Sequence record: PQ390715.1
Length of the DNA stretch: 64,000 bases
Reading direction: 5' to 3' (one strand)
Made by a program: the position numbers and the translations under genes. How positions within the stretch are numbered: position 1 is the stretch's first letter; every line of letters begins with the position of its first letter. Below are positions 4,162 through 61,112 of this stretch, piece after piece. A model generated the notes under the pieces. That model made no database searches. It was not told the DNA's origin and saw only the letters and a program-made list of their open reading frames with translations.

Positions 4162-7100
4162 ATGACTAATAATTTTAAGTTTCAACCTACACAGATGGCT
4201 GAAGCAGTACAGAAGAAGCTTTTTATTAAAAGATTGCCTGAGTGGATGCAAGGCTTAGAAGATATTCAAAAAGTCAGTGATGATGTTATTCAACAATGGT
4301 TTAATCCGGCTGAAAACGAATTAGTTGACGGCTATATTGGTGATATGGGTTCTCCTGCCGCTGCTGGTAATATCTTCTTACATGAAAGTACTGTAGCACG
4401 TCAACTTTATCAGTTGTCCACTGCTTACGTCTCAAAAAATGATGATTCGACAATTCGTTCAATTCAATTTTATGATGATCTAGTTGGATACATGAATCAT
4501 TATGGAGCACTAACCGATAATGAAAGCCGTTTGTTCAACGGTAAGTTTTATGCATGGACTCCAGCTATTAACCCAAATAAAATGAACAATTTTAGCTCAT
4601 ATCTTTGGGATACTAAAAACTCTTATAATATTACTTCACCTGATTACATTGTAATGGAACGTGGAGCACTTAATGGTAATACATGGTCACTACAAAACTT
4701 TTGGTATACTTTAGGTGAAACATTAGAAGATGGCTCAATATTAACTGAAGAATTAATGCAAGATTCACGTTTTATTCGTGCACGTGCACCAATTATTGAA
4801 TATAATAAAAATATTGAGCTAATTAACTACGGTACAAAATTCCGTGGAACTGTTGATCTGTTCTCTGATATTATTAAACCTGAAGATATCGTTCAAAAAG
4901 ATATTAATAGTGGTATACGTATTGATGGTATTATTCCGCAAGATGGAATGCGTATTCTATTCACCAGTATTGGTAACAATGGTGAAAACAATAGAATTTA
5001 TAATGTATATGTGAAAAAAATGCAAGATGGTACTCGTGTTTATGGTTTAGCACTAGATCCAGAAGAAGAAACTGAATCACGCCCAAGTGGTGAACCTCAA
5101 GATGGTGATGTTGTTCTAATCACTAAAGGTAATGAGTATGGTAATAGTTCTATGTACTGGAATGGATCTTTGTGGGTTCGTGCACAATCAAAAACTAGTG
5201 TTAACGTATTCCCTAAATTCCAACTTTATGATCGTAATGGTATCAAACTTGACAACAGTACTACATATTCATCAAGTAACTTTAAAGGTTCAGAGTTGTT
5301 TGGTTTTAAAATAAATTACAACTATGCAACTGATAGTGTATATGGATATAACATTGAACTTGGTGATTATAATTATTACATTTATGAAAACTTTTTACAA
5401 TCCCAACGTTATACCTATGACCATCTTGGAAAAGAAGTTGAAATTGATGGTTTATACTATTATAACATTATTGATGAAAATAATGAAATGAATCTTCAAA
5501 CCGATTGGGTTCGTTCAGAAGAGTACTCTAAACAATTTGTAAAACAAACTCCACAAGTCCAACGTACTGATATGTATCGTGTATTCAGTACTGTTTATGA
5601 TATGGAAGTTTTTAAAGAACCAGTTGATGGTATGTATGCATATGTTATTGAAGTTGATAGAACATATCAGTACTATAAAGCTGACCGAGAAACTTATCTA
5701 GATTGGCATCCAATTACTGGTGATGGTGTTCAGATTGTAAAATATGACCATACATTCGAATTGGCACAAAAAGTTTTAGATAATGACTCTGATATTATTG
5801 AAGTTGTGGTTGATGGTGTTGATGTGTCCAAATATACCAAAAATGTTTCAAAAGGTCAAGTACAAAGCATCACTCTAGATAGTACTGTAGAATTGGATGA
5901 AGATTCTGTTATTCAAATCAGAACTTATAGCAGTACTGTAACTCCTAATAAAGAATTAGGTGCATATGAAGTTCCAATCAACCTACAAAATAACCCATAT
6001 AATTCTAATATTATATACATTAACCAAGGTGACTACACTTTACATTTTCAGGATATTATTCAAAAGAACATTACACGTGGTTCTTCTGATGATTTCAATG
6101 ACTATGAAGAACGTTTGGCTAAAGGATTGGTTAATAATGGCGTAGGTACTAAAATTATCCAAAATGAAGCATCTATGCTTCCATTGATGGCACATACTGC
6201 AAATGAAGATATTGATTTGTTTGAAGCAACTATGTTTATGCAATCTGAATATTTTAGATTCATTAATAAATTTAATACACAAATGCTTCGTATGTATGAT
6301 GAAAATCCATCAGACTTTTTACAAAATAGTGCTGCAAACATTGTTGATGCAATTTTAACTACTATTAATATGGGACGTGATAGTTCATTCCCATTCTATT
6401 ATGATAATGTTGGAAGTACTTCTGGATTCATTCGTGCATTTATACCACCAACACCACAGTTCTTAGGTATTCTTCAAGCATATGTACCAGAAAAAGCGAC
6501 ATTCCTCACTGCTGGTAGTAAACCAAGCTGTTATAACATCAGTCATACTGGTATTATTTCCAAAGCATACCGTGTTATCAATGGTGTTGATAAAATGGAT
6601 GATGTTGTATATGAATTAGAAAATAGAATTTTTAATAGTATTGATAATAAATTCAAAGATGTTGATTACGTACCAGTATTGAATAGTGATGACCTTTTCC
6701 CTACACCATATTTCACTAAAACTGAATATAGTGCTGAAGAGAAACAAACATTATTACTACGTGGATACATTAACTTCACCGCAACTAATGGTATCAGTAA
6801 TAGTACACATGATTATGATCCTAACAATTGGAGAACTTGGAACTATACTGGCACTTATTATGTAGTTAATGGTCAAAGTACTGAAATTCCTGCACGTGGT
6901 TCATGGCGTGCCATTTACACTGACCAATATGGTACATATCGCCCAGCTACCCATCCGTGGGAAATGTTTGGCTTTACACAACGTCCAACTTGGTGGAACC
7001 AAGAATACGAACCAACGGCTGTTCAAGTTGGTGAACGTGATAGTGATGTTGTATATGTATATGAAGCACTTGTTATGAATGAGCAAGGTGATTTAGTTCC

Positions 7101-10100
7101 TAGTGGTCTTTGGGATATTGACGGAACTATTGGAGATAGCAGTACTGGAACTATTTTATTTGGTGATCGTCGTGGTCAATATGACAAATATAAAAGATTT
7201 GGTGTACAGCCATTCAAAATTACAAAAACTGGAAATAAAACATCTTCTGGTATTGATATTTGTGTGGTTGAATATATTGCACCTGAAATTTTAGGTTTAG
7301 TGTCTGGATCTTTAAATCATAGAGCAGAACCTTGGACATATGGTGATATGGGTGACATGGAATTTACATACATGAACACTACATTGTTTGCATATGACCA
7401 AATGATGCTTTTGTATAAAGCTAAACCAGCACAATTTGCTAACTATTTCTGGGATACCCGCAACGATAACTTAAAAGAAGTATTCACTGATGGTTCACAA
7501 TTCCTTTATGGTGATACACGTAAGCGTATTAATTTTGATAAAAATACAGTAGTTCATGGTGAAAATAGCACAAGAACAATTGGTTATCAAATGTTTGTAA
7601 GTGACCATTTGATGTATCAAAATAAAAATATTACCACCAAGTATGGGGATGTAGTTCGTTCTTCTTATATAAATGTTGGTCATAAAATTGGAGGATTTAC
7701 TAAAGCAGATCAGCTAACATTCAATGCTAAATCTTTCGGTCTTATTTCACAAGAAAACCAAACCATTGGTCTTGTTCGTTCTAATAATATCCGTGATGAG
7801 CAAATGAGTGCGATCAAAATTACTTGGAATGGTAGTGCATATCAGATTGATGGATATGATCTAGTTGGTGCTAAATTTAAATATAAACTTCCAGTAAAAA
7901 ATGGTAGAAAAGTAACTCTTAAATTGGAAAACCGTAATGTTGTTCATTATAATGAATGGAAGTCTGAAGCTTCAATTGAATATGGTAAAGTTTTCAATAG
8001 TTACCAAGAAGTTTATACTTTTATTTGTGGATATGGTGAATATCTTAAAGAACATGGTTGGATTTTTGAAGATGTAAATGATAGTGGTGCTCAACAAGAT
8101 TGGAACACTATTGCTAAAGATTTCGTGATCTGGAGTCAGAATTCTCTAGTAACTGGTGAATTTATTTCTTGTACCCCAAGTGCTGCAAACGCTAAATTTG
8201 GGGCAGACTTTGGTTCAGTACAATCTATTACGCAAAATAATGGTGGTGTATGGTCATTACTTGATGATAATAACCAAGGTATTCGCCAATATGAAATTGA
8301 AACTTCTCGTATTGGAAATATCTTCACTGTTAGAACTTTAGAATCTAATAAACGCATTGCATTGATTCGTTTAAGTTTGTGTTCATATGAACATGCTGTT
8401 ATTTTTGATGATAAAACTATTTTTGGTGATTACATTTATCAGCCAACATATGGTTCTATTCAAGAACTAATTAAAATGTATGGATATATTACTGGTTCAT
8501 GGACTGGTCGCCTACAAGCTCCTGGATTTATTATCTTGGAAGCTGGAACACTACCATCATTTGAAAAATTAGTGTCGGATTTCCAACATTATTATGATAG
8601 TGAAACTCCAGTAAGTGATGTACAATTACAAGAGTTGTCAAACCATTTGATTGGTTATCAATCTCGTGATTATCTACAGCGTATGATTAGTAGTGATGTT
8701 AGTCGTGTTGATTTCTATAAAGGATTCATTCACGATAAAGGTACTAACCAAGTTTTAGAACGTGTACTTCGTGTTTCTAAATCATATGACACTGATGAAT
8801 ATAAAGCATTACAAGAATGGGCATTTAAAATTGGTACATATGGTAATATTGATGGTAAGAAAAACCTTCAATTTAAACTAATCAATGACCAATTTAAACA
8901 ACAACCTCAAATGGTTTCTTTTGATGTAAATGCAACTTCAAATGGTAATGGTAATCATATTGTATACTTCGGTGAGCAAGGTAAAGATCCTCGTTGGATT
9001 ACACGTCCAAATGGTAAGTTCTCATTCCCAATGCGTAGTGGAAGAAGTGAAAACATCCAACTTCCAGATATTGGTCCAGTAACATTGGATGAAGTATCGT
9101 ACACAACAAAAGATTTCAGTACTGCATATAATGACCGCATAACTTATACTAATGGTAAAGGTGAAAATCCTGAATCTGTGTGGATGTTTAAAGACGGTAA
9201 TGGTTTGTGGAACATTTTTGAATTGGTTGATACTAATGTACAAATGGTTTCTATAACACCTATTGAAAATACCGATGTGTATGCTGAACAATTTTGTAAA
9301 GTAACTTTAACTGATAATGTACCACTTGAAGATGGTGATTATTATTATTTTGTTGATGAAACTAACTTTATGCCAGATACTTTAACAGTAGAAAGTCAAT
9401 ATTATACTGCTGGTTCTGATCCTAAAGTTATGGTAGTTCCATTTGACACTTCTATTGATATTGAATTTACTGATCCAGATACACGTCCACGTTTGTATCG
9501 TTATGTATCACGTTTTGCCAGTACTGATGAACGTCAAGCTTACATTGACAAGAAATATAGTTTTAAAGCACCACAAAGTACTTTATTTGATCGTCCAACG
9601 ACATATGATGAACGTACTAACATTACTGAGCTATATCTAAACGTTTATGACCCAATTAATGGTGTTATTCCAGGTGCGGCTATGCAAAACGTAACATATA
9701 CTTCACCAGTTGATCCTGCACAGTATAATAGTAATGGAGAGTTAATCCAGGCTTGGGGTGCTGATAAAGTTGGTCAAGTATGGTGGAACACTAGCACTGC
9801 ATTTTATTTGGATTATACTCGTGCAATTTATGACGCAGACGGTAATGTTGATATTGATGCAACCAATGAATACAAACGTTACAACTGGGGTCGTTTGTTA
9901 CCACATAGTACCATTGATGTGTTAGAGTGGGTTTGTTCACCAGTTGAGCCATATAACTGGGACAAATACTGTAAAGATGTTGCTAAGAAAAACAAAAATA
10001 ATACTATGTATCTACCAAGTGGAACTGCACTTGAAGATAATTATAGTACATTTTTGGAATATGATAGTTCAACTGATAGTTATGTGACAAAATACTATTT

Positions 10101-13100
10101 CTGGGTACGTGATACAATTTATGTACCACCACTACATACCAGAACGAAATCATGTACTGACATTGCTCGTATTATTAAAGATCCAACACAGCTAAACATT
10201 CCTTGGTTCGCTCCAATAAATGAAAACTCGTTTATTCTTAGTAATATGCAATTTAAAGTGAATGATGATACCAGTATTTTAACTGTTTCTTATTACATGG
10301 ATAGTACTGAAGTTGTTAAACATGACCAGTATCAACTATGTAAAGAAGGTGACAGCTATAACTTTAACCCACTAATTTGGGATTCAATGTGGAACTCACT
10401 AATTGGTCAAGAAACAACTGAATCAGGTTCTGTGATTAATTTATTATATCCAGATGTTGATAACGGTTTAGGATCAAACAAAACTTGGTTCCAAAATGTT
10501 ATAGAAGCTCGTAGAAACTTTGTAGAAAGTGCTAATAATTATTATAGGTCACAAAACATAACCACTAATAGTGTTGTTATGGAAGATGTGTTTAATGTTA
10601 AAACCACTGAAGTTAACCCTAATGAAGTTTCTTTCCGTGTGTTGTCTTACAATAATGAATTAGTTATTGCAGTTGAAAGTGATAAATTTAAAGAAAATGA
10701 CGCTGTTATTTTAAGTACTAGTGGATATCTACCAAATCCATTAACTTCTAGTGCTGTTTATTTTATTCACTTCGACGAAAATGGATATATTCAGTTAATG
10801 AATAGTCCAGCAAACGCGGGTAGTGTTGTTACTATAACGTTAGAAAACAAAGGTGAGGGACAACATAAAATGATTAAACAATCTGATTATGTTGAATCAC
10901 TAGGAACCTCATTAGACATGACTCAGTACTGGTCATATGCTGATTGGTATGATGTTGGATATGATAGTAACACGACTTATACTCAAGAGTCAAGCTTAGA
11001 AGATGCTAATACTAAAAACTACCAAGTTGGCGATATTATCAGAGTTACCGATAGTGAAAACATTTGGACATTGTATATTAAATCACAATCACGCGATTCA
11101 ATTTATTGGAAAGCGATTGGTCGTGAAAACAGTACAGTTGAACTCAATGATATGCTTTACGCAGATTATAGTGTTCATAATGATAATGGTTCACTAAGCA
11201 ATCGTGAAATCAACGTTCGTAAAGCACTAGCTTTACTCAAAAATTCTTTCGATTTACATCAAAGCGAAATTGTTTTTGATATGGTCAAATATGTACATGT
11301 TGAACAAAGTGTTGTGGATTGGGTATTTAAAACATCATATATCTATATTGTTGGTTTGGAACAATCATTAGTTCAAAACTATTCAAACGATAATTTGATT
11401 AATCAAATTGTTGAATATTTTGAAGAAGTTAAACCTTATAGAACTAAAATTCGTTCACAAATAGAGCAAAAGACATCTGATGATGATTTAATAAAAGGTC
11501 TATGTAATGATTTAGATCCTAATGGATATATTTTCGTTGACGGTTCTTGGATCAAAACTGAAAAAGATATTTGGGATTATGAGTACGCTCAATTTAATGA
11601 AATTACCCAAAAATGGGAACAGGTAGGTTCACTACCAAGTGATTTCGTTACACCAAATAGAAGATTCCAAGAAATTGATATTATTATGCATTATGATAAT
11701 ATTCAGTGTAAACCAAATGAAGATTTGGCAAGCATAAATGAATTAGTAAGTGTTAATAACAAATATCAATCCAATGAAAAGGATGCTGTTAGTAACTATG
11801 AATTACAACGTTATATATATTCTTTCCCAGAATATAGTGAAGAAACTTTCGATCTTCTTATTGCTTATCAAATGCAAATCTACTATCCAGAATTGGATGT
11901 AACACTAGGAACAGCATATGGCGTTAACCAGTGGTATAAAGACCATGCGGAAGATTTAGAAGCAACTGATGAATTCACTGCTACATTGGAACGTGTTTAT
12001 AAAGAATCAACGCATAACGATATGTTTACTGACCTTAGACAATATGTTCAGTATAACACATTGGCAAACCGTTTGAAACTTTATAAAGATATAAGTGATG
12101 AGAAAATTCACGATGAAGTTGGATGTGGATTTAGTGGACTTACTTATAATGACAATCCTAGTACTAGACTTCCATTAGGCTTTTCTTCTAGTAATGATTA
12201 TAACTATGGATATTTTGAAATAAGCAGTGAATTGTATCAAAAATACATTTCATTAATTAAAGATAAAAATCCTGACGCATCAGACTATGAAGTAAAAGTT
12301 AAACTTGAAGTTGAGTATGGTGTATATGTTTATCGTTATGATGAAGTAGGTGGTGATACCCGTTTCTATACTGATGCTATTCACGTATTAGCAGGTATGA
12401 GAGGGTTATTCGACAAAGACGCTACTGATAAGTACGAAAAAGCTGAAGAGATTCTTAGTAAGACCCCAATTGATATCTATGCAATTACAATGATTCCACG
12501 AAAATATGTTTACTTAAATGTTAACGGTGTATATCAAAGTATACCTGATGAACAAAGTATTGATGATTTCATGGAAGATTATTTTATCACAAATGGTGAA
12601 ATGGTTGAACTAGCTGAAATAAATCTTGATGATTTACCACTAGATCAAAATAATCCAATGTATTCTGATTATCAATATATACTTGATAGTATTACTGAAG
12701 CTAAGTACTTCAATGATATGAATGCATTTGATAACCTAGCATTGGAATCTCAAACTTCTTCAATAAAATGGGAAGTTAAAGATGATGAAGTTGATCCTTA
12801 TATTGTGGATATATCTGACATAAACCCTTCTGGGCGTGATGTTGGACAAATTAGATTTACAGTTGATGGATATGGGTTTGACAATGTATCTCTTGTACAA
12901 TTACGTGATAACAGCAGATATCAAACTGAAGGTATGGCAATTATCAATCCATATAAACATACAGAAGCAATTGTAAGTATTCCTTCATATGCTAAGATTG
13001 AAAATGATATTAATAAAACAACATCGAAGTTTGATGAAAAATATTTCTATCGTGTGAGATCTATTAATAGCTTAACTGAAGCAGAAATAGTTGACAATGA

Positions 13101-37500: not shown

Positions 37501-37528
37501 ATTATATCATATTTTTATAAGTTGTCCC
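37501..37528 (-). promoter_or_regulatory. Early promoter
   Basis: GGGACA-16nt-TATAAT with TGA extension. Confidence 0.6.
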
Positions 37529-53799: not shown

Positions 53800-54018
53800 T
53801 TATTTTGAATTATACAAGCAGTACAGGTATACCAATGGAGTAAAATGCTCGGAATCTATTATATATATTAACTGAGTAACATATATTCCATATAGATCTC
53901 GTGATTTATCTCTGTACATTAACAATGATTTATTTAAGTAAGGATCAACCCAGTACTTAATATCATTGTACTTCAACGTGTTATTACGGTAACCTGACAG
54001 TTTCGAATTTTTATTCAA
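53800..54018 (-). CDS. Hypothetical protein
   Basis: 72-aa ORF overlapping the upstream stop codon. Confidence 0.5.
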   Translation of the reverse strand: MNKNSKLSGYRNNTLKYNDIKYWVDPYLNKSLLMYRDKSRDLYGIYVTQLIYIIDSEHFTPLVYLYCLYNSK

Positions 54019-54388
54019 TTTTCTTACAATTACTCAGTAAGTGAATGATATCATCAGCAGTGAATGGTCCCAATACCAGAACTTCTTCACCATTACCGAA
54101 AATGCTCAATGGTACTGATTGCTGACCAGCTAGATATTCAATTTGTTCCAGTTCGAAAATGTCATCAGCAGCATAAACTACCTGCTCCATTTCATTATCT
54201 TTAATCCATGACTGCCAATGTTCTTTAAACTTCTTAGCTTCGTATTCTTGAACATAGTTAGGTGATTCAGGGTTGTATTGATGTAACATAGTCATCCCAG
54301 CCATTACTAATTCTTTAGGGGATGGTGTAGAATCTTTCAGTACTACGATAGCTTGGATAGTTTTTACTTTAACGTCATTAGCAGCCAT
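54011..54388 (-). CDS. Pth2 (peptidyl-tRNA hydrolase 2)-fold protein, degenerate
   Basis: QAIVVLKD...W.SW...VVY.ADD..EL..I...A....VP.SI...VLVLGP...D.I follows the Pth2 pattern, but GKxxAQxxH and DAGxT are absent. Confidence 0.5.
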   Translation of the reverse strand: MAANDVKVKTIQAIVVLKDSTPSPKELVMAGMTMLHQYNPESPNYVQEYEAKKFKEHWQSWIKDNEMEQVVYAADDIFELEQIEYLAGQQSVPLSIFGNGEEVLVLGPFTADDIIHLLSNCKKIE

Positions 54389-54400
54389 TATATACCTCTA

Positions 54401-54718
54401 TTATAGAATGATTTTATTCTCAGGAACGAAAACTTTTGGAGTGTTTTCGATTGCTTTAATAGCATCAACATAAGCATCAACTAATGCAGGGTTTGCATCA
54501 CTAACACTAATAATGTTGGATTTATAAAAAATAACATTTTTCTCCATACTAACAAACTCTAGATAATCACGAAGAATGATTTCACCATTTTCGTCAGTCC
54601 CTAGTTGTGCTGGGTAGTTAACTACAACAGCTTCAGCAGAATCGGTTTGTAGAACTGCTAGTACTGGGCCAATGTTATTGATGTTTAGTAGTTTAACGGT
54701 CATAGTCATTTTTGTCAA
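54401..54718 (-). CDS. Small beta-rich protein, possible Sm-like fold
   Basis: VKLLNI...VVVNYP...VIFYKSNIISVSD..P.L...Y...IIL resembles a conserved T4-like-phage Sm-like family. Confidence 0.4.
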   Translation of the reverse strand: MTKMTMTVKLLNINNIGPVLAVLQTDSAEAVVVNYPAQLGTDENGEIILRDYLEFVSMEKNVIFYKSNIISVSDANPALVDAYVDAIKAIENTPKVFVPENKIIL

Positions 54719-54728
54719 GTCCTTTTGT

Positions 54729-55205
54729 TTATTTTAGAATGTATAAGTGTTTTTCTGCATTGACCAGTCGGTGATCAATGATTTCTTTGATAACGTTCCA
54801 GTTACCGCCGCCCAAATCGGCTCCAATTTTCGGGAAGTGTACATGAACATCTCGATCAACTTTACAAAAATAATTTAGATGTTTGAACACATCGTCGATT
54901 GCATCATAACTGACATATTTAGCACCGTCATTACCGTACATTTTTTGGGTAATACAGTTTGCAATAATCAAATTATCGTTAATTGCTGAATATGCAATTT
55001 GTCCAATTCTAAGAAATCCCATTTCCTTTTCATATGCTTTATAATCATCATATGCCATTGGGTAACGATTTCTTAGCTCTTTTGCAAAACCTGAACCCAT
55101 TTTACCCTGTGCGTTACAACCATGAGCAATTATATGTATTGCTGTTTTATCATCTGTAACAGTACTGAATAATTCAAACAGATTACCTCGGTGTTCATGA
55201 ATCAT
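54729..55205 (-). CDS. Macrodomain (ADP-ribose binding/hydrolase; T4 tk.4/Poa1-like)
   Basis: GNLF, IAHGCNAQGKMGSGFA..L...YP and FPKIGADLGGGNW. Confidence 0.9.
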   Translation of the reverse strand: MIHEHRGNLFELFSTVTDDKTAIHIIAHGCNAQGKMGSGFAKELRNRYPMAYDDYKAYEKEMGFLRIGQIAYSAINDNLIIANCITQKMYGNDGAKYVSYDAIDDVFKHLNYFCKVDRDVHVHFPKIGADLGGGNWNVIKEIIDHRLVNAEKHLYILK

Positions 55206-55216
55206 TATATTCTCCG

Positions 55217-55246
55217 AAAAGAAAGGACTCTGTGATCAGAGTCCTT
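55217..55246 (-). terminator. Intrinsic terminator
   Basis: AAGGACTCTG-ATCA-CAGAGTCCTT-TCTTTT on the minus strand. Confidence 0.8.
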
Positions 55247-55254
55247 ATTTTAAA

Positions 55255-55512
55255 TTATTCTTCTTCACCGAAACGGATTTTCTTTAATTCTTTTCGATGC
55301 TTTCTAGCTATTGTACTTTTGTGAAGTCTATTACTGCGTTTTGTGTCTTTTGTAATGTACCATGAATCTTCTGGTGCATCATAATCACAAAATCCATCTT
55401 CCGTAATTGTTCCTAAAAATGCAGATTTTTTAGGAATATTAGTTTGAGCTTTAGCCTGAAATTGACCTTTTGCTAATTGTTCACGAAAACTGAGCATAAT
55501 AGTATCTCCCAA
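55255..55512 (-). CDS. Small protein with basic C-terminus
   Basis: 85 aa (probable ATG at 55497 after GGGAG); TAAATA at 55545-55550. Confidence 0.6.
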   Translation of the reverse strand: MGDTIMLSFREQLAKGQFQAKAQTNIPKKSAFLGTITEDGFCDYDAPEDSWYITKDTKRSNRLHKSTIARKHRKELKKIRFGEEE

Positions 55513-55543
55513 ATTGTTAAGAAGAACTTTTTGTTCTTCACAT

Positions 55544-55795
55544 TTATTTAGGGTTGCCAGAAACCTTCACATATTTGATAAATGCCAAAATATCATCTTT
55601 ACTAAAAGATTTTACAATAAATTCGACAGCGGAATCATACTGTTCTTGTTTAGATAGATATTCTTTCATCTTGTTAATTTTAATCTGGGCTTTTTCTTTA
55701 GCTATTGAAATATCAGGAATTTTGAACTCTACTCCCAACGTATCAGCTAGTTGTTTTGCACGAGATGATACTTTTTCAATATCCATTAGTTCCAA
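55544..55795 (-). CDS. Hypothetical protein
   Basis: 83 aa overlapping the glutaredoxin stop codon. Confidence 0.6.
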   Translation of the reverse strand: MELMDIEKVSSRAKQLADTLGVEFKIPDISIAKEKAQIKINKMKEYLSKQEQYDSAVEFIVKSFSKDDILAFIKYVKVSGNPK

Positions 55796-56034
55796 CGACC
55801 TTCTTTAAGACCTTCAATAAACCCAGTACAACCACCTGGTACATAAATGTCATTTACGAAAATTTGAGGAACTTGACGAACTGGTTCACCACAAATTTCA
55901 GACAGTTTTGAACCATCGATACCTTCAGCAACAATATCTACAAACTCCATTTCAAATTTATTTTGTTCACATACAGCTTTTGCAGTGTCGCAAAATTTAC
56001 AACCAGTCTTGCGACCATAAATTTTAACTTTCAT
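55786..56034 (-). CDS. Glutaredoxin (T4 NrdC-like)
   Basis: CKFC redox motif, VRQVPQIFV and GGCT. Confidence 0.9.
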   Translation of the reverse strand: MKVKIYGRKTGCKFCDTAKAVCEQNKFEMEFVDIVAEGIDGSKLSEICGEPVRQVPQIFVNDIYVPGGCTGFIEGLKEGRWN

Positions 56035-56035
56035 G

Positions 56036-56468
56036 TTATTTCCTTCTATTTCTTTGAAAAGCTTTAACAGCTTTAATAATACTGTTACACATTCGTTCAG
56101 TCAAATACTTTTGACATTCTCGTACATCAATGTACATGAACTTATCCAATTCTGGATGACTCTTACCATATCTATTAGTGTAAGTACTTTTACAAACTAA
56201 TTCATCTGGTATTGGTTTGTCTTTGGCAGTATAAAAGAAAAGTACTAACCTTTTTCCCTTTCTATAGGATACATCACCAAGAAACAGAAGATCATCTTCA
56301 TCGATTTCGTATCCTGTCTCTTCGAAACATTCACGTACAGCAGCTTCTTTGAAAGTTTCATTACCCTCAGCTTTCCCTTTAGGTAAATCCCAATGATTCT
56401 GTCCGTGTTGTATGTCCGATAAGTATCTGACCATCACGATAAAATATTATACCACAACTATAACGCAT
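56036..56468 (-). pseudogene. nudE: T4 NudE-like NUDIX hydrolase split by a +1 frameshift
   Basis: ATG at 56468 gives MRYSCGIIFYRDGQILIGHTT; after one extra C (56405) GQNHWDLPKG...AAVRECFEETG continues. T4 NudE begins LSAGIIF...GRVTG...WDIPKG. Confidence 0.75.
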
Positions 56469-56509
56469 ATCTTATCTCTTTGTCATCAATCGATGTTCAG
56501 ATACTAATA

Positions 56510-56537
56510 ATTATATCAGTTATTGGTTTTTTGTCCC
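56510..56537 (-). promoter_or_regulatory. Early promoter
   Basis: GGGACA-16nt-TATAAT, same pattern as 37501-37528. Confidence 0.6.
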
Positions 56538-56545
56538 ACTATTTT

Positions 56546-57658
56546 TTAGAACATTTGTTTGATTGCTTCGTAACGAAGTTCACAAACAAAATCACGAATT
56601 TCTGACGTTTCAAGTTCACCATCTTTGACCATTTGCTGAATATCAGGCAATTCAACATCAGTATAACGATCATAAACTTTAATAATTAGATCTTCAAGTT
56701 CTAAATCAATTTCTTTTCGCAAAATGAAGTATTCCAAAACTTTATAAAGGAATTCTTCACCTCCGTTATTTTTAATATTCATATCCAATAAAATATTACC
56801 CATTTCAATAGGGGTCTTTTTACGGAATGTTTTGATATCATCACGGAAACGTTTGATATAATTACTAAATTTAACATACTTAACTGGAACTTTAATAGCA
56901 CCGTTAAGTACTGAATCATTATTTACTTCTTCATTTTCAAGAAGAATAGACCACAGAAAATATGGTTTATATACATCTGTACAGTTCTCTGCAATATAAT
57001 CAATAAGGTCTAAATTCTTTTTGGTCAAAGATGTATTAAACACCTTTTCGTAATAACCAAATTTACTTAGCGTCTTAAGGAACTTTGCAGGCTTTTCTTC
57101 GGAAAATGCTTTTTCGAATTCCACAAACACACGGTCAGGAACAAGATGATTTAGCTCACCACTATTGACCATTCCAATAGCGAGTTCCTCAGTGCTTTCA
57201 TGGATAGTAAAGTCAGAATAACGAGTAGCAAATCGAGCAAGACGTAACACACGTAATGGATCTTCTTTAAAATGGTCAGACACATGACGTAGTACCTTGT
57301 TCTTGATATCAGCTTTACCACCGTATGGGTCAATGTGAATTTGTAGTACTGGATCATACGAAATTGCATTTATTGTTAGGTCACGGCGATACAAATCTTG
57401 TTCGAGTGTTACGCCTTTTGTATCCACTTCAAAGCCACCATATCCAGTACCAGTTTTACGCTCAGTACGGGCTAATGCGTGTTCATTACCTTCTGGACTT
57501 AGATATACAGGGAAATCCTTACCTACTTGCTTATAGCCAATACTTTGCAAGTACTTAATATCAGATTCAGTTGCTCCGACAATGACATAATCTTTGTCTT
57601 TTGCACGAAGACCCATTAAACGGTCACGGACGTAGCCACCAACCAAATACTTTTTCAT
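56546..57658 (-). CDS. cca: CCA-adding tRNA nucleotidyltransferase (class II), HD domain absent
   Basis: YLVGGYVRD...KDKD, VGKDFPV, ALARTERK, DL.RRDLTINA and EDPLRVLR.ARF. Confidence 0.92.
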   Translation of the reverse strand: MKKYLVGGYVRDRLMGLRAKDKDYVIVGATESDIKYLQSIGYKQVGKDFPVYLSPEGNEHALARTERKTGTGYGGFEVDTKGVTLEQDLYRRDLTINAISYDPVLQIHIDPYGGKADIKNKVLRHVSDHFKEDPLRVLRLARFATRYSDFTIHESTEELAIGMVNSGELNHLVPDRVFVEFEKAFSEEKPAKFLKTLSKFGYYEKVFNTSLTKKNLDLIDYIAENCTDVYKPYFLWSILLENEEVNNDSVLNGAIKVPVKYVKFSNYIKRFRDDIKTFRKKTPIEMGNILLDMNIKNNGGEEFLYKVLEYFILRKEIDLELEDLIIKVYDRYTDVELPDIQQMVKDGELETSEIRDFVCELRYEAIKQMF

Positions 57659-57659
57659 A

Positions 57660-57782
57660 TTATTCCCCCATCAACCAATCACGCAAACGTTCCCAGAAGC
57701 CTTTGGGCTTATATTCTGGGTATTCATATTCATCAGTGCCTTGCTCGGAAACACCCCAATCTTCTTCTAACATAGCAATCAT
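57660..57782 (-). CDS. 40-aa acidic microprotein (not in ORF track)
   Basis: GGAGG-ATG, MIAMLEEDWGVSEQGTDEYEYPEYKPKGFWERLRDWLMGE*; fills the gap and abuts the cca start. Confidence 0.65.
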   Translation of the reverse strand: MIAMLEEDWGVSEQGTDEYEYPEYKPKGFWERLRDWLMGE

Positions 57783-57793
57783 AATGCCTCCAA

Positions 57794-58216
57794 TTAAATT
57801 AATCTATCACGTAGACGGTCGTAATATTTTTCGTGTATAGCTAGTATACACTGATATGCAGAATAGTCAATGCCAAATGTATCATCAATGAACATGTACT
57901 GATCAAGTGTTTCTGGTCCATTATCATCAACTGGTAATGTCCCTTCTTTTTTTGATAGGGTGTGCCACATCAACTCACTTTCAATATGGTGAGTTGCGTA
58001 TGTCAATTCAATCTTACTTTTTCTTAGTAAAATTAACAATTCATCATTGTCGTCGAGTGCATTACGAAATTTAATACGAACAGTACCCTGAAAATTATTA
58101 GTGTACATAACACGATGTTGATTATATGTAACTAAACCACGTCTTTCAGTACTGATTTCGTGTTCAGCAAAGTACTTTAACGTTTCATTAAATTTTGGAA
58201 TTTTAGTAACGTCCAA
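57794..58216 (-). CDS. Hypothetical protein, paralog A of tandem pair
   Basis: C-terminal GTLPV...LDQYMFIDDTFGIDYSAYQ.I. Confidence 0.75.
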   Translation of the reverse strand: MDVTKIPKFNETLKYFAEHEISTERRGLVTYNQHRVMYTNNFQGTVRIKFRNALDDNDELLILLRKSKIELTYATHHIESELMWHTLSKKEGTLPVDDNGPETLDQYMFIDDTFGIDYSAYQCILAIHEKYYDRLRDRLI

Positions 58217-58619
58217 TCACATAATCCTCATAAAGTTTGTATACCCTCATTATACTCTGATATGTATCAAAGTCAATGCCAAAGGTATCATCAATGAACT
58301 GATATTGCAAAAACTCTTCCTCTGTAGCAGCAATAGGAAGAGTACCGTTTCGTTGTTCTGTTGATTGAACATCCTCAATATACATCAACACTATACTTTC
58401 ATCCAGATTTATATCTATCATAAAAACATCTTCACTATAAAATATGTTATATGTACGGATGAAGAGATTTCCTGTTCTATCATAACTTGACACGTGTGTT
58501 TCATAATACATTTTATCTAAACTAAAGAACAAACCTGTACTATCTGGCTTTTTAGTATTTTTTAATTTAATTTCGATAGCATCAATCATAGGTTTAATAT
58601 CAAACTTTTTCATAGACAA
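58203..58619 (-). CDS. Hypothetical protein, paralog B of tandem pair
   Basis: C-terminal GTLPI...FLQYQFIDDTFGIDFDTYQ.I. Confidence 0.75.
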   Translation of the reverse strand: MSMKKFDIKPMIDAIEIKLKNTKKPDSTGLFFSLDKMYYETHVSSYDRTGNLFIRTYNIFYSEDVFMIDINLDESIVLMYIEDVQSTEQRNGTLPIAATEEEFLQYQFIDDTFGIDFDTYQSIMRVYKLYEDYVIGRY

Positions 58620-58795
58620 ATCACATACTTATTACTATGTGGATCGTAACAATATGAATCATTTACCTTAATACCAGGCTTAAGTTCAATAGTTGTTCCT
58701 GTTTCTGTACTGGGTTCTGCATCACAATAAATCATCACACCAACCCCGACTAGTAAGGATATGATACATATAACTATACATATTGTATATTCCAT
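58610..58795 (-). CDS. Small membrane protein
   Basis: N-terminal hydrophobic helix ICIVICIISLLVGVGVMIY; SD GGAG. Confidence 0.65.
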   Translation of the reverse strand: MEYTICIVICIISLLVGVGVMIYCDAEPSTETGTTIELKPGIKVNDSYCYDPHSNKYVICL

Positions 58796-58808
58796 AAATT
58801 TATCTCCA

Positions 58809-59204
58809 TTATAAAAAGTAATTATACAGTTTATTGTACAATATAAAAAGGTCTTTCACATTATCATAAGTAATATCAGATACATCATGAATTAATGATA
58901 ACTGAAAAAATGAAGCTTCGTCTATTTCTGCTGGAATTATAACATCACCATCTTCTTCGTCCATTTTATTGGTGTAGTATTTTATGTGATCTACATTCAA
59001 CTCAATAGAGAACGCAATGTTGGTTTTTGTATAATCTTCAATTAATCCAATATATTGAGATTTTTCATTAATAAAAAATCCAATCCCAACACAACGGTTA
59101 TCTGGATATGGATAGTACCATCTATTAATAACTAGGTGTTCAGGTAAGTCCATATCATGTGTTGATATTATAGATTTTACAATTTCCATCCAGGAATAAT
59201 TCAT
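58809..59204 (-). CDS. Hypothetical protein with C-terminal EIDE..FFQLS motif
   Basis: 131 aa; SD GGAG. Confidence 0.7.
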   Translation of the reverse strand: MNYSWMEIVKSIISTHDMDLPEHLVINRWYYPYPDNRCVGIGFFINEKSQYIGLIEDYTKTNIAFSIELNVDHIKYYTNKMDEEDGDVIIPAEIDEASFFQLSLIHDVSDITYDNVKDLFILYNKLYNYFL

Positions 59205-59220
59205 AATTAAAACTCCATAA

Positions 59221-59249
59221 GAAAAGGGACAGAATTAATCTGTCCCTTT
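59221..59249 (-). terminator. Intrinsic terminator after HPF
   Basis: AAAGGGACAGA-TTAAT-TCTGTCCCTTT-TC on the minus strand. Confidence 0.85.
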
Positions 59250-59257
59250 AGTATATA

Positions 59258-59590
59258 TTACTCTTCGTTTTCTGTCAAATCATCAAGAACTGGGTGTTCT
59301 GGATGGTTTCGGCGGTGTAATTTAATGCTTTTGTCTTTACTGAATACAGTTTCCATTTTTTCAAATGAATCACCAATTGCTTTGTATAAATCTGCTGCAT
59401 CGGCAGTAACTGATTTACTACCTGATGTTAGAGTCACAGAGTATTGAGACTTATGCTCTTTCTTCACATGAACTTCAATATCCATTACAGTTGAAGTACG
59501 GAACTTTTCAAGACATTTAGCACCATCGTAAATTGCATCTTGAATTGCTGTAGTAAAATCAACATTACCTTGAATATTTAATTTTAGCAT
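59258..59590 (-). CDS. hpf: Ribosome hibernation promoting factor (HPF/RaiA, S30AE family)
   Basis: LNIQG-NVDFTTAIQD.I....LEKF...V.V.......A.A.DLYKAI.....K.E aligns by eye with E. coli HPF. Confidence 0.7.
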   Translation of the reverse strand: MLKLNIQGNVDFTTAIQDAIYDGAKCLEKFRTSTVMDIEVHVKKEHKSQYSVTLTSGSKSVTADAADLYKAIGDSFEKMETVFSKDKSIKLHRRNHPEHPVLDDLTENEE

Positions 59591-59606
59591 AATTTACCTA
59601 CCTTTT

Positions 59607-60533
59607 TTAGAGTGAACTTAACAACAAATCTGCTCGGTTTGTAACTTGACGATACCATAAGGAATTCATTATTTCTTTTTTAAATTTCTTAGGGTTATCA
59701 TTTTTTACACTGTTCCAAAGTTTATTAAACGAAGCTAACTTATCTACTCCCATTGTATAGCACATTTCAAAAAGAATACGTTGTTGTTCTTTGGTCAGAT
59801 TTACTGCTTGTTTTTTCTGCATCAATAATAAAAAGTCATCATATGTTCTTTTCATATCTTGCATTAAAAGTTTGTTGGCTTGAGCTTTGGTAATACCGTT
59901 TCTGTACTTGATAGCATCAGATTCTTTTCTTCCCAAATAATGCCCATAACCGATTGTATAATTACCTTTCATATCCTTGTAAGGATGAAATTTAGAATTG
60001 TGGAAAGGAACTCCGACTTTCCCACCAAGTAAACGGCGTTTGTTCTTGGACTGAAATTCAATTGAACCTTCAGCTTCTTTGATGTGATTGACAATTTCTG
60101 GATCATTATAATCAAACTGTACAGTCACATCTGGTAACAATACGTTCTTCAAATCCTCTTTTGTTGGGATAAAGATACCCTGAGAAGTATGAAGAGTAGC
60201 ATTTAAATTGATATTTTTCAACAAAATAACATACTCTTCAAGTTGTACATTTTTAGGTTTAAACTTTTTAGCAATAGAATAATAACTATCACCAGGTTGA
60301 ACCGTATAATGCTTCTCGCCGCGTGGAACATCCTTTGATATTTCTACCTTTGGTAATTCCTGCTTTTGAATTTGCGTAACTTGTGGTTTTAAATTGTGTA
60401 CCTGACTTTCGTCCGATGATGATACACGATCATTTTGAGAAAAACCATAAAATCCAATCGCAGCGACAAGTACTGTGCAAACTAGAACACCATAAGTAGT
60501 CTTAGTTTTCAGTGCTTTTTTCGCTTGTTTCAA
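59607..60533 (-). CDS. Membrane-anchored LysM + T4-type (GH24) lysozyme
   Basis: Basic N-terminus and TM helix, LysM (YTVQPGDSYYSIAKKF...L..IN), lysozyme IKEAEG...D..G..TIGYGH and SLWYRQV.NRA; TTG start at 60533 after GGAGG. Confidence 0.8.
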   Translation of the reverse strand: MKQAKKALKTKTTYGVLVCTVLVAAIGFYGFSQNDRVSSSDESQVHNLKPQVTQIQKQELPKVEISKDVPRGEKHYTVQPGDSYYSIAKKFKPKNVQLEEYVILLKNINLNATLHTSQGIFIPTKEDLKNVLLPDVTVQFDYNDPEIVNHIKEAEGSIEFQSKNKRRLLGGKVGVPFHNSKFHPYKDMKGNYTIGYGHYLGRKESDAIKYRNGITKAQANKLLMQDMKRTYDDFLLLMQKKQAVNLTKEQQRILFEMCYTMGVDKLASFNKLWNSVKNDNPKKFKKEIMNSLWYRQVTNRADLLLSSL

Positions 60534-60537
60534 AACG

Positions 60538-60605
60538 CCTCCTTTGTTGATTGTTAAGATGGGCAATCACAAAGATGGCAAAGAGGCCATTTGCAAAAGC
60601 CTCAT
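60538..60605 (-). promoter_or_regulatory. Structured 5' leader with anti-SD hairpin
   Basis: CTTTGTGATTG pairs with CAATCA(A)CAAAG abutting GAGG; alternative helices GAGGC/GCCTC and ATGGC/GCCAT. Confidence 0.55.
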
Positions 60606-60649
60606 CGGACTTTCTACAGTACAAAAACGTTCTTTTCAAATGTTTAAGT

Positions 60650-60687
60650 AGTATAGCATATTTTTATTTTATTACAAGACATATTTA
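60650..60687 (-). promoter_or_regulatory. Tandem late (TAAATA) and sigma70-type promoters of the lysozyme gene
   Basis: TAAATA at 60682-60687; TTGTAA-16nt-TATACT with TGn extension at 60650-60677. Confidence 0.5.
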
Positions 60688-60701
60688 CTGTAAAAACCAC
60701 A

Positions 60702-61112
60702 TTAATCGTAGTAGGTTCTACCTACAGTGATGTGATATTTAAAGTACTTGGTTGGTAGTCCTAGTTCATTTCTAATATGTGTGATGAAATCATCTTCAAA
60801 TTCAATGATAAAGAATGAACCTGGATTCTTTTTATCTTTTACTATCTCAATACAAGGATTGAACTTTATCTTTACTTTCATTCCATCGTATTTTTTCCAG
60901 TACTCTGGATTTGGTGGCACTTCACCACGAACGATACTGACATGTGCTCCCCATTGTGGGTCTTTAATATCAATATGTAAGTCAGTTCTGATGAAGTACT
61001 GGTAGTATCTAACCAACTGTAATGGAAGTTGTAGTACTAACCAGAAGTCCTTCTTCTTTTTCATAGTGCCACGATCTGGATCATACACCAGAGTTCCTTC
61101 CATATCAATCAT
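60702..61112 (-). CDS. 2H phosphoesterase-superfamily protein
   Basis: Two Hx(S/T) motifs followed by hydrophobic residues: AH57VSIV and YH127ITVG, 70 residues apart in 136 aa. Confidence 0.7.
   Translation of the reverse strand: MIDMEGTLVYDPDRGTMKKKKDFWLVLQLPLQLVRYYQYFIRTDLHIDIKDPQWGAHVSIVRGEVPPNPEYWKKYDGMKVKIKFNPCIEIVKDKKNPGSFFIIEFEDDFITHIRNELGLPTKYFKYHITVGRTYYD

Follow-up and report, generated by a model that had tools for sequence, protein, structure and literature searches.

A probable mixed, inherited neighbourhood of accessory genes, with predicted tRNA-end and ADP-ribose enzymes, in a RaK2-like jumbo phage

Introduction

The window analysed here, a 64,000-nucleotide stretch of record PQ390715.1, carries a 7-kb block (54011–61112) in which predicted tRNA, nucleotide and ribosome-associated proteins lie side by side, raising the question of whether these genes form one system or are neighbours with separate work. 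The DNA of the window matches that of Escherichia phage SHEFM2K at 100% identity; this phage, which infects E. coli, is a RaK2-like jumbo phage in the genus Asteriusvirus. We find that the block is best explained as a mixed, inherited neighbourhood of accessory genes of RaK2-like jumbo phages, and is probably neither a single operon nor a single system.

Results

The block comprises 16–17 densely packed open reading frames (ORFs), every one on the minus strand, in agreement with an earlier note on this DNA. Most of the enzymes named in that note are present, with six family calls (macrodomain, GrxA glutaredoxin, T4-NudE-type Nudix, class II CCA, short HPF and 2H-SAK) upheld by profile, PDB or motif evidence. 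About eight ORFs, roughly half, have no known function. The note made no mention of a LysM lysozyme, three paralogous ORFs or five small ORFs without known function that also lie in the block. Window coordinates of the features are:

54011–54388, minus: divergent protein of Pth2 fold in which the canonical DAGxT motif is missing (AF2/Foldseek, Pfam matches of homologues)
54401–54709, minus: 102-aa protein, the 'Sm-like' protein of the earlier note (weak DUF6561 link)
54729–55205, minus: macrodomain of T4 Tk.4 / Poa1p / SCO6735 type (PDB matches, T4 Tk.4 homology)
55255–55786, minus: two small ORFs without known function
55786–56034, minus: GrxA-family glutaredoxin, CKFC site (profile matches, active-site motif)
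56036–56434, minus: T4 NudE-type Nudix hydrolase (PF00293 at 1e-12)
56510–56537, minus: candidate extended -10 promoter ahead of the Nudix gene, GGGACA-N16-TGATATAAT
56546–57658, minus: class II CCA-adding enzyme, 370 aa, no HD domain (PF01743, PF12627)
57794–58216, 58203–58613 and 58809–59204, minus: three paralogues without known function (phrog_20693, 17453, 36582)
within 57794–59204, minus: 61-aa ORF among the three paralogues
59223–59249, no strand assigned: 11-bp hairpin between the HPF gene and the next, overlapped by a TTGACA-17-TATACT site
59258–59590, minus: short HPF/YfiA-type ribosome-binding factor, 110 aa, no dimerisation domain (PF02482 at 4.2e-9, TIGR00741)
59607–60533, minus: LysM and T4-type lysozyme with N-terminal hydrophobic segment (Pfam Phage_lysozyme 1.3e-11, LysM)
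60702–61112, minus: 2H-SAK phosphoesterase, 136 aa, HVSI and HITV motifs (PF22547 family)

The genes had been placed under early promoters, which the sequence does not show: sigma-70-like sites are at chance frequency (51 observed, 52.5 expected), with one good intergenic extended -10 site, that ahead of the Nudix gene, and one late-type motif inside the block (TAAATAA at 55550, with orf4, 55255–55497). A near-identical GGGACA-N-TGATATAAT site is found at 37528, and four of ten TGATATAAT sites are intergenic. Orf4 is followed by a hairpin (55223–55246). Together, the intergenic candidate promoters and hairpins would divide the block into at least three to four units.

Gene order is kept as 2H – lysozyme – (HPF) – CCA – Nudix – Grx – macro – ORF2 – Pth2 – neck – dNMP kinase – sheath. 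RaK2, Munch, CBB and XbC2 all carry this order through the neck, dNMP kinase and tail sheath genes, and XaC1 keeps it except for 2H-SAK, which was not detected there by tblastn. Because the conserved order runs on into adjacent structural genes, the linkage looks like plain synteny. In more distant phages close linkage decays, with 2H-to-CCA distances of 3.3 to 212 kb, and smaller groups recur, namely CCA–macro–Nudix in G007 and G009 and 2H–PTH2 in G015 and G018. The gene co-occurrence across jumbo phages that the earlier note proposed to check is seen as kept order in the RaK2-like clade, but the structural genes share it and close linkage fades with distance.

The CCA enzyme displays all four class II motifs (GGYVRD, DKD, RRD, EDPLR) together with the neck RNA-binding domain, and its PDB matches are CCA-adding and A-adding enzymes. 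A multifunctional E. coli-type CCA protein with a C-terminal HD phosphohydrolase, the end-healing domain, was considered and rejected, since no HD dipeptide occurs anywhere in the 370 residues and the match to NF008137 spans only positions 1–207 of 409, scoring 272 bits where the cut-off is 451. Three of the seven SHEFM2K tRNA genes do not encode the CCA end, and maturing these tRNAs is most simply the role of the enzyme. The tRNA genes are ~160 kb from the block, and genes for Pnk and Rnl1 also lie outside it (record positions 10034–12932).

The 2H-SAK protein scores 25.6 bits against PF22547 (threshold 27), and 24 of 28 homologues have a precomputed assignment to this family. Across 19 homologues the H-x-S/T motif residues His57, His127 and Thr129 are invariant and Ser59 is present in at least 90%; a further 24 loci also carry both motifs. 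An identity as an Acb1-like anti-CBASS phosphodiesterase was rejected, as comparison with T4 Acb1 (57B) gave no similarity in sequence or profile (hhalign probability 0.4%, E = 0.14); none of 77 tblastn matches is a T4-like record. Thirteen of 19 distant viral contigs, representing five of seven sublineages (60% identity), have the 2H-SAK gene within a same-strand tRNA gene array, and Vibrio phage 2.275.O and Bacillus phage G have it 5–7 kb from tRNA arrays. One contig (L061) interleaves tRNA genes with CCA, canonical PTH2 and 2H-SAK genes inside 4 kb. In CBB the neighbours of 2H-SAK are a Ro-like DUF2828 protein and a second RNA ligase (PF09414), and XbC2 likewise has DUF2828 beside it. The position inside tRNA arrays and the lack of Acb1 similarity together favour work on tRNA ends over signal degradation, weakening the earlier suggestion that the 2H enzyme removes signal nucleotides. 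The other suggestion, that tRNA 3' ends are healed by 2H and then CCA, keeps its theme: tRNA-end work or RNA repair fits both enzymes, and the tRNA arrays and the RNA-ligase and DUF2828 neighbours would agree with it.

For the 54011–54388 protein, described previously as Pth2-like, the fold is retained while the canonical catalytic motif is not. The protein itself has no Pfam match at E ≤ 0.1, PF01981 included, and seven of 11 homologues match PF01981 (best 5.6e-7). An AF2 model (pLDDT 76) searched against the PDB with Foldseek gives Pth2 structures as all of its best 10 matches (probability 1.00, TM 0.55–0.73). The catalytic residue of archaeal Pth2 is the Asp of a D-A-G-x-T stretch. On alignment with Methanocaldococcus jannaschii Pth2, IIRDAGHT is opposite SIFGNGEE of the window protein, so that FGNGEE faces the canonical motif and Asn99 occupies the Asp position, in a stretch that is variable across the clade. 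The canonical phage PTH2 of contig L061 retains DAGLTE, and a better PTH2 match is encoded elsewhere in the SHEFM2K genome. The adjacent 54401–54709 protein is not confirmed as Sm-like: profiles of 9 and 16 sequences gave no Sm/Hfq match in the PDB or Pfam, and its AF2 model, at pLDDT 37.5, is too poor to use. Its sole hints are a weak DUF6561 relation and an ESM-Atlas structural neighbour with PF16243.

The macrodomain is sub-threshold in its own Pfam score (16.4 bits, cut-off 22), and matches PDB macrodomains 2fg1, 2afc and 5e3b (E = 8e-16 to 8e-12), yeast Poa1p in the PDB (E about 1e-6) and T4 Tk.4 (30% identity, E = 2e-12). The Nudix protein shares 38% identity with T4 NudE (E = 3e-17), which is annotated as active on ADP-ribose, and has an intact Nudix box (GX5EX7REUXEEXGU) beginning at residue 20. 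Homologues occur in 1265 phage records, with T4-like phages the majority among the matches listed. It is plausible that the macrodomain and NudE are a pair for ADP-ribose processing that T4 has also retained.

HPF passes its Pfam threshold (PF02482, 37.4 bits against 23.7) and has PDB matches at E about 1e-3. Amino acid identity of HPF is just 84% between genomes 98% identical in DNA, and the gene was not found in RaK2 or in any of the 19 distant contigs. The glutaredoxin most simply serves the phage's own ribonucleotide reductase, NrdA being encoded in the genome. The LysM lysozyme, whose N-terminus reads as a membrane segment, is retained throughout the RaK2-like clade and is a probable endolysin, a lysis gene. 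Outside Asteriusvirus, tblastn did not detect the paralogue region (57794–59204), save that Salmonella phage Munch has a partial match to the third paralogue (27% coverage). Orf4 shows 56–72% identity over the whole clade.

Among known systems, a 15-kb region of T4 (NC_000866, 60–75 kb), ordered tk – tk.4 – vs – regB – e – nudE – tRNA genes – 57B (Acb1) – gene 1, resembles the block in gene content, with thymidine kinase nearby, the Tk.4 macrodomain, lysozyme e, NudE and a 2H-superfamily protein; a dNMP kinase beside structural genes is another shared trait. The gene order differs, however; a CCA enzyme, HPF and a Pth2-fold protein are all lacking from the T4 region, and the 2H protein of T4, Acb1, has no detectable sequence relation to 2H-SAK. 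T4 also keeps its tRNA genes within the region, unlike SHEFM2K. Repair of anticodon breaks by T4 Pnk and Rnl1 likewise aims at tRNA restoration, and both genes are present in the phage, but the block itself has neither ligase nor kinase.

Discussion

The reading we consider best, with a probability of about 0.5, is an inherited accessory-gene neighbourhood that holds a tRNA-care core, an ADP-ribose pair, HPF and unrelated genes, the enzymes most likely acting independently. Within the core, 2',3'-cyclic phosphate ends would be the substrate that 2H-SAK opens, and the HD-less CCA enzyme, judged by motifs and context, would make or restore the 3' ends of the three phage tRNAs with no encoded CCA as well as those of damaged tRNAs, with the divergent Pth2-fold protein, of uncertain activity, beside them. 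The Tk.4-type macrodomain and NudE-type Nudix, by analogy with T4 NudE and Poa1p-type relatives, may convert ADP-ribose derivatives to AMP. HPF, short, fast-evolving and lineage-specific, presumably binds host ribosomes, and the remaining genes (GrxA, the membrane-anchored LysM endolysin and several ORFs without known function) are probably unrelated housekeeping. A part in counter-defence is plausible for some of the enzymes.

Several observations count against this reading. The linkage may be pure descent, the phage tRNA genes are distant and Pnk and Rnl1, for tRNA healing, are encoded elsewhere. A 2H enzyme alone would also leave a phosphomonoester blocking CCA addition.

It is possible, though unlikely, that the genes have no functional connection and are unrelated, non-essential accessory genes, adjacent merely through collinearity of RaK2-like genomes. 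This would account for the order shared with the neck, dNMP kinase and tail sheath genes, for the loss of close linkage with phylogenetic distance, and for the half of the ORFs without known function, but not for the different pairs that recur together in rearranged distant genomes, nor for the tie of 2H-SAK to tRNA arrays in five sublineages.

We are more doubtful of the proposal of the earlier note, in which eight genes are an integrated counter-defence island against tRNA-cleaving, ADP-ribosylating and cyclic-nucleotide immunity, acting by tRNA 3' healing, reversal of ADP-ribosylation, signal destruction and ribosome shielding. The families are real, their co-location is kept over the RaK2-like clade, the CCA–macro–Nudix and 2H–PTH2 groups recur in distant jumbo phages, and Iyer et al. 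2021 (PMC7824862) proposed roles of this kind for each family in turn. Against integration, 2H-SAK is not Acb1-like, HPF is absent from RaK2 and all 19 distant contigs, the Pth2-fold protein is missing its canonical motif, simpler roles exist for the glutaredoxin, lysozyme and CCA enzyme, the synteny runs into structural genes, and the block appears, from its candidate signals, to be divided into several transcription units.

Equally doubtful is an NAD-linked by-product route copying yeast tRNA splicing, where Cpd1 (2H), Poa1 (macro) and Ysa1 (Nudix) belong to the same three superfamilies and follow 2'-phosphate removal by Tpt1/KptA: 2H-SAK would turn ADP-ribose 1'',2''-cyclic phosphate into ADP-ribose 1''-phosphate, the macrodomain would remove the phosphate and NudE would yield AMP and ribose 5-phosphate, as the Poa1p match (Poa1p being an ADP-ribose 1''-phosphate phosphatase), the T4 NudE annotation, the company of 2H, macro and Nudix genes in the block and in one T4 region, Tpt1/KptA in the E. 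coli control genome and the logic described in Iyer et al. 2021 would allow, but the phage has no Tpt1, repair of the T4 Pnk/Rnl1 type produces no junction with a 2'-phosphate, and the strongest context of 2H-SAK is tRNA arrays rather than macro or Nudix genes.

Family-level roles of the block genes had already been proposed. In their account of the RNA-repair and counter-nucleotide repertoire of jumbo phages, Iyer, Anantharaman, Krishnan, Burroughs and Aravind propose these roles for families that the block shares (2H, Macro, Nudix, CCA-adding enzyme and PTH2), which are handled genome-wide where that text treats them; a term search of the text found neither HPF, the 54011–61112 block nor tRNA arrays. 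What is new here is the context of 2H-SAK inside tRNA gene arrays. On our preferred reading of a mixed neighbourhood, the enzymes of the block most likely work separately, and would sustain translation through the long infection of a jumbo phage.

Gene content and conservation of the block

The block (window 54011–61112; record coordinates are obtained by adding 248000) carries the following genes, together with small open reading frames:

54011–54388, (−) strand, Pth2-fold protein
54401–54709, (−) strand, ORF2, named Sm-like in the earlier note
54729–55205, (−) strand, macrodomain protein
55255–55497, (−) strand, orf4 (80 aa)
55786–56034, (−) strand, glutaredoxin
56036–56434, (−) strand, Nudix protein
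56546–57658, (−) strand, CCA enzyme
57794–59204, (−) strand, three tandem paralogues (phrog_20693 and phrog_36582; two also give weak phrog_17453 matches)
59258–59590, (−) strand, HPF
59607–60533, (−) strand, LysM lysozyme
60702–61112, (−) strand, 2H protein of the 2H-SAK family

The genes are close-packed, every one on the (−) strand. Over its 7.1 kb, the block is 100% identical to Escherichia phage SHEFM2K (PQ390715) and 95–99% identical to 121Q, PBECO4, phAPEC6 and other Asteriusvirus genomes. It is followed on the same strand by genes for a neck/adaptor protein, a dNMP kinase and the tail sheath, and is preceded by small unknown ORFs and, in relatives, also by thymidine kinase. Rfam families gave zero matches at window 52–64 kb. 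Most of the gene families named in the earlier note were confirmed, except that Pth2 holds for the fold only, the Sm-like call is unproven, and the LysM lysozyme, the three paralogous unknowns and five small ORFs had been overlooked.

The distance from the 2H gene to the Pth2-fold gene is 5–7.5 kb in RaK2, K64-1, Munch, CBB, GAP32, fHe-Yen9-04 and XbC2. The full gene order is conserved across the RaK2-like clade, but so is that of the genes for the neck, the dNMP kinase and the sheath, as expected from genome-wide collinearity, and we regard the linkage as largely inherited synteny. Some variation is seen: CBB has an RNA ligase and a Ro-like DUF2828 protein immediately before 2H-SAK, as well as a YqeY protein within the block, and XbC2 also has DUF2828 before 2H-SAK. 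In T4, a stretch of 15 kb takes in a similar gene set (tk, tk.4, e, nudE, a tRNA array, 57B, which encodes a 2H protein, and gene 1), which gives the neighbourhood an ancient look.

Assignment of the individual proteins

The Pth2-like protein has no Pfam match of its own; seven of 11 homologues match PF01981, and the ten best structure matches to its model (pLDDT 76, moderate confidence) are exclusively Pth2. Where the canonical DAGxT motif aligns, the protein reads FGNGEE, in a stretch that varies within the clade, whereas the canonical phage PTH2 of a distant IMG/VR contig, L061, keeps DAGLTE. That L061 gene (9051–9392) contains a single in-frame TGA, which could reflect a sequencing error, a break or recoding. 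RaK2-like phages have several Pth2-fold paralogues, RaK2 itself having four (RaK2 record 164268, 176628 and 294923 are those listed). The best Pfam PTH2 match in SHEFM2K is at record 4945–5358, 5 kb from Pnk and Rnl1. ORF2 belongs to a small phage-only family, with 17 representatives in an exhaustive HMMER search. Its profiles found no Sm/Hfq relative in PDB or Pfam, only a weak DUF6561 link; an AF2 model from a nine-sequence alignment was unusable, and a single Atlas structural neighbour is the sole hint of an Sm-like barrel.

The macrodomain scores below the Pfam threshold and matches solved macrodomains with E-values of 8e-16 to 8e-12, T4 Tk.4 with 2e-12 and yeast Poa1p with ~1e-6. The Nudix protein has an intact Nudix box and 38% identity to T4 NudE, with homologues in more than 1200 phage records; T4-like phages are the majority among the matches listed. 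The glutaredoxin is GrxA-like, with a CKFC site, and has an obvious partner since the phage has NrdA. Simpler housekeeping roles are available for several of the block genes.

The HPF is of the short form, with a Pfam score over threshold. It is not found at the corresponding place in RaK2, and outside Asteriusvirus its divergence is beyond the reach of tblastn. The gene is a divergence hotspot (84% amino-acid identity, compared with 98% DNA identity across the 7-kb region) and is truncated or partly deleted in several Salmonella SD phage records, possibly through assembly errors. In a full-text literature search, no study of what HPF does in phages was found.

At its N-terminus, the LysM lysozyme carries a hydrophobic segment, in the manner of a signal-anchor-release endolysin, and spanin genes lie ~8 kb upstream of it in the record. 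Outside Asteriusvirus, tblastn with the tandem paralogues gave only one short and partial match, in Salmonella phage Munch; a phrog_17453-annotated gene at SHEFM2K record 138268–138693 adjoins tRNA-Thr. The small orf4 keeps 56–72% identity as far as Xanthomonas phage XaC1, a conservation equal to or above that of most neighbouring enzymes. A late-type motif of its own precedes the gene and a hairpin follows it immediately; an Atlas search gave no lead to its function.

The CCA enzyme and tRNA repair genes

The CCA enzyme has the full class II motif set (GGYVRD, DKD, RRD and EDPLR); of the model for the E. coli multifunctional CCA protein, it matches the first half only. There is no HD dipeptide in its 370 aa, so the enzyme is without the phosphohydrolase end-healing domain. 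Among the seven SHEFM2K tRNA genes (record 138.7–142.8 kb), three (Thr, Ser-ACT and Gly) are missing an encoded CCA; maturation of the phage's own tRNAs by the CCA enzyme was already suggested in the RaK2 paper (PMC3622015). The classical tRNA-break repair pair, Pnk and Rnl1, is encoded at SHEFM2K record 10–13 kb, while a search of the genome for RtcB, Tpt1, DUF2828 and the PF09414 RNA ligase found none of them.

2H-SAK genes often lie within tRNA arrays in distant phages

The 2H protein scores slightly below the 2H-SAK (PF22547) threshold; 24 of 28 homologues are assigned to the family. Two H-x-S/T motifs are kept family-wide, with both histidines invariant. Using the 2H-SAK alignment as a search pattern, we retrieved 35 viral contigs, comprising 16 RaK2-like and 19 distant (26–42% identity) loci. 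No tRNA gene lies within 10 kb of 2H-SAK at any of the 16 RaK2-like loci. A same-strand tRNA array surrounds the gene at 13 of the 19 distant loci (IMG/VR contigs, among L048–L064, with 2H-SAK at ~10001–10400 of each); 6–32 tRNA genes lie within 10 kb, on both sides, the nearest being 34–1152 nt away. These 13 loci form five clusters at 60% identity; arrays are absent from the two other clusters of distant loci. In Vibrio phage 2.275.O and Bacillus phage G, the 2H-SAK gene is 5–7 kb from a tRNA array. An earlier description of 2H-SAK inside tRNA arrays was absent from the papers that we consulted, and this placement is the one observation here of value for follow-up. One distant jumbo-phage contig encodes an amber-reading tRNA, with a CUA anticodon (L053:15154–15228), and a second one has a tmRNA gene (L066:122–547).

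Other block families recur more loosely in the 19 distant contigs. CCA lies 3.3–212 kb from 2H-SAK and canonical PTH2 0.6–221 kb (adjacent in two); two contigs have the macrodomain adjoining CCA and a Nudix gene, and HPF is found in none. In L061, the order is tRNA-Leu, tRNA-Met, CCA, two ORFs, PTH2, tRNA-Trp, tRNA-Cys, 2H-SAK. Pairs of these genes recur in distant jumbo phages, and the tight eight-gene arrangement is confined to one clade.

The 2H protein had been proposed to remove signal nucleotides, as does Acb1 (T4 57B), an anti-CBASS 2H protein. A relation to Acb1 was rejected on a negative hhalign comparison with T4 57B, which showed no profile similarity. On this result and the tRNA-array context, we favour a putative tRNA-directed function of 2H-SAK, rather than breakdown of cyclic-oligonucleotide signals.

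Transcription signals

Sigma-70-like sites show no excess (51, compared with 52.5 in shuffled sequence), and the T4 late-promoter octamer TATAAATA has 0 copies in window 1–64000, against an expectation of 10.6 ± 3.1. Of 21 TAAATAA copies, 12 are intergenic, where intergenic DNA makes up 3.6% of the window, and most co-oriented copies lie 12–116 nt ahead of a structural gene; the motif is a likely late-promoter core. Within the block, the sole intergenic copy is at 55550, before orf4. Four of ten copies of TGATATAAT are intergenic, one of these being 56518, ahead of the Nudix gene. Hairpins at 59223–59249, 55521–55539 and 55223–55246 divide the block and, with the motif positions, suggest several units. 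Judged from these signals, block transcription is probably mostly non-late, and the early promoters named in the earlier note are putative. Four wastewater metatranscriptome runs contained scattered read-length contigs only, in which RNA and DNA, and early and late, are indistinguishable.

Interpretation and significance

Our preferred reading of the block is a neighbourhood of accessory genes, inherited and mixed in content, in which a tRNA-care core and an ADP-ribose pair stand beside a lineage-specific HPF and unrelated housekeeping genes. Much is already known: the genome is in GenBank with most annotations, and the family-level hypothesis is in print. Iyer et al. 2021 (PMC7824862) place jumbo-phage 2H, Macro, Nudix, CCA-adding enzyme and PTH2 in RNA repair, ribosome rescue and counter-nucleotide defence, and the Sharanji paper gives HPF-type (S30EA) and CCA proteins as translation factors. 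A text search of the PA5oct paper for gene and promoter terms gave no match, and our literature search found no functional study of the block genes. The joint counter-defence interpretation of the earlier note reasonably restates a published family-level hypothesis, and gains independent support for its tRNA-end part only.

A more specific and unlikely reading (probability roughly 0.15) is that 2H-SAK, the HD-less CCA enzyme and a Pth2-fold protein are remnants of a ‘tRNA-array maintenance module’ once present in ancestral jumbo phages. Such a module would heal or rebuild tRNA acceptor ends cut, blocked or mis-charged by host immune toxins, while the Tk.4 macrodomain and NudE would clear ADP-ribose-type by-products. 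In one distant contig (L061), tRNA genes are still interleaved with CCA, PTH2 and 2H-SAK.

Our analysis adds corrected Pth2 and Sm-like calls, exposes the synteny, identifies simpler roles and provides the tRNA-array context of 2H-SAK. If the module reading is true, the long-uncharacterised T4 tk.4 and nudE, and the 2H-SAK family, would gain a defined counter-defence role. The broader tRNA-care reading, if true, would show how giant phages sustain translation under host attack on tRNA ends, and would give functions to the widely conserved T4 tk.4 and nudE.
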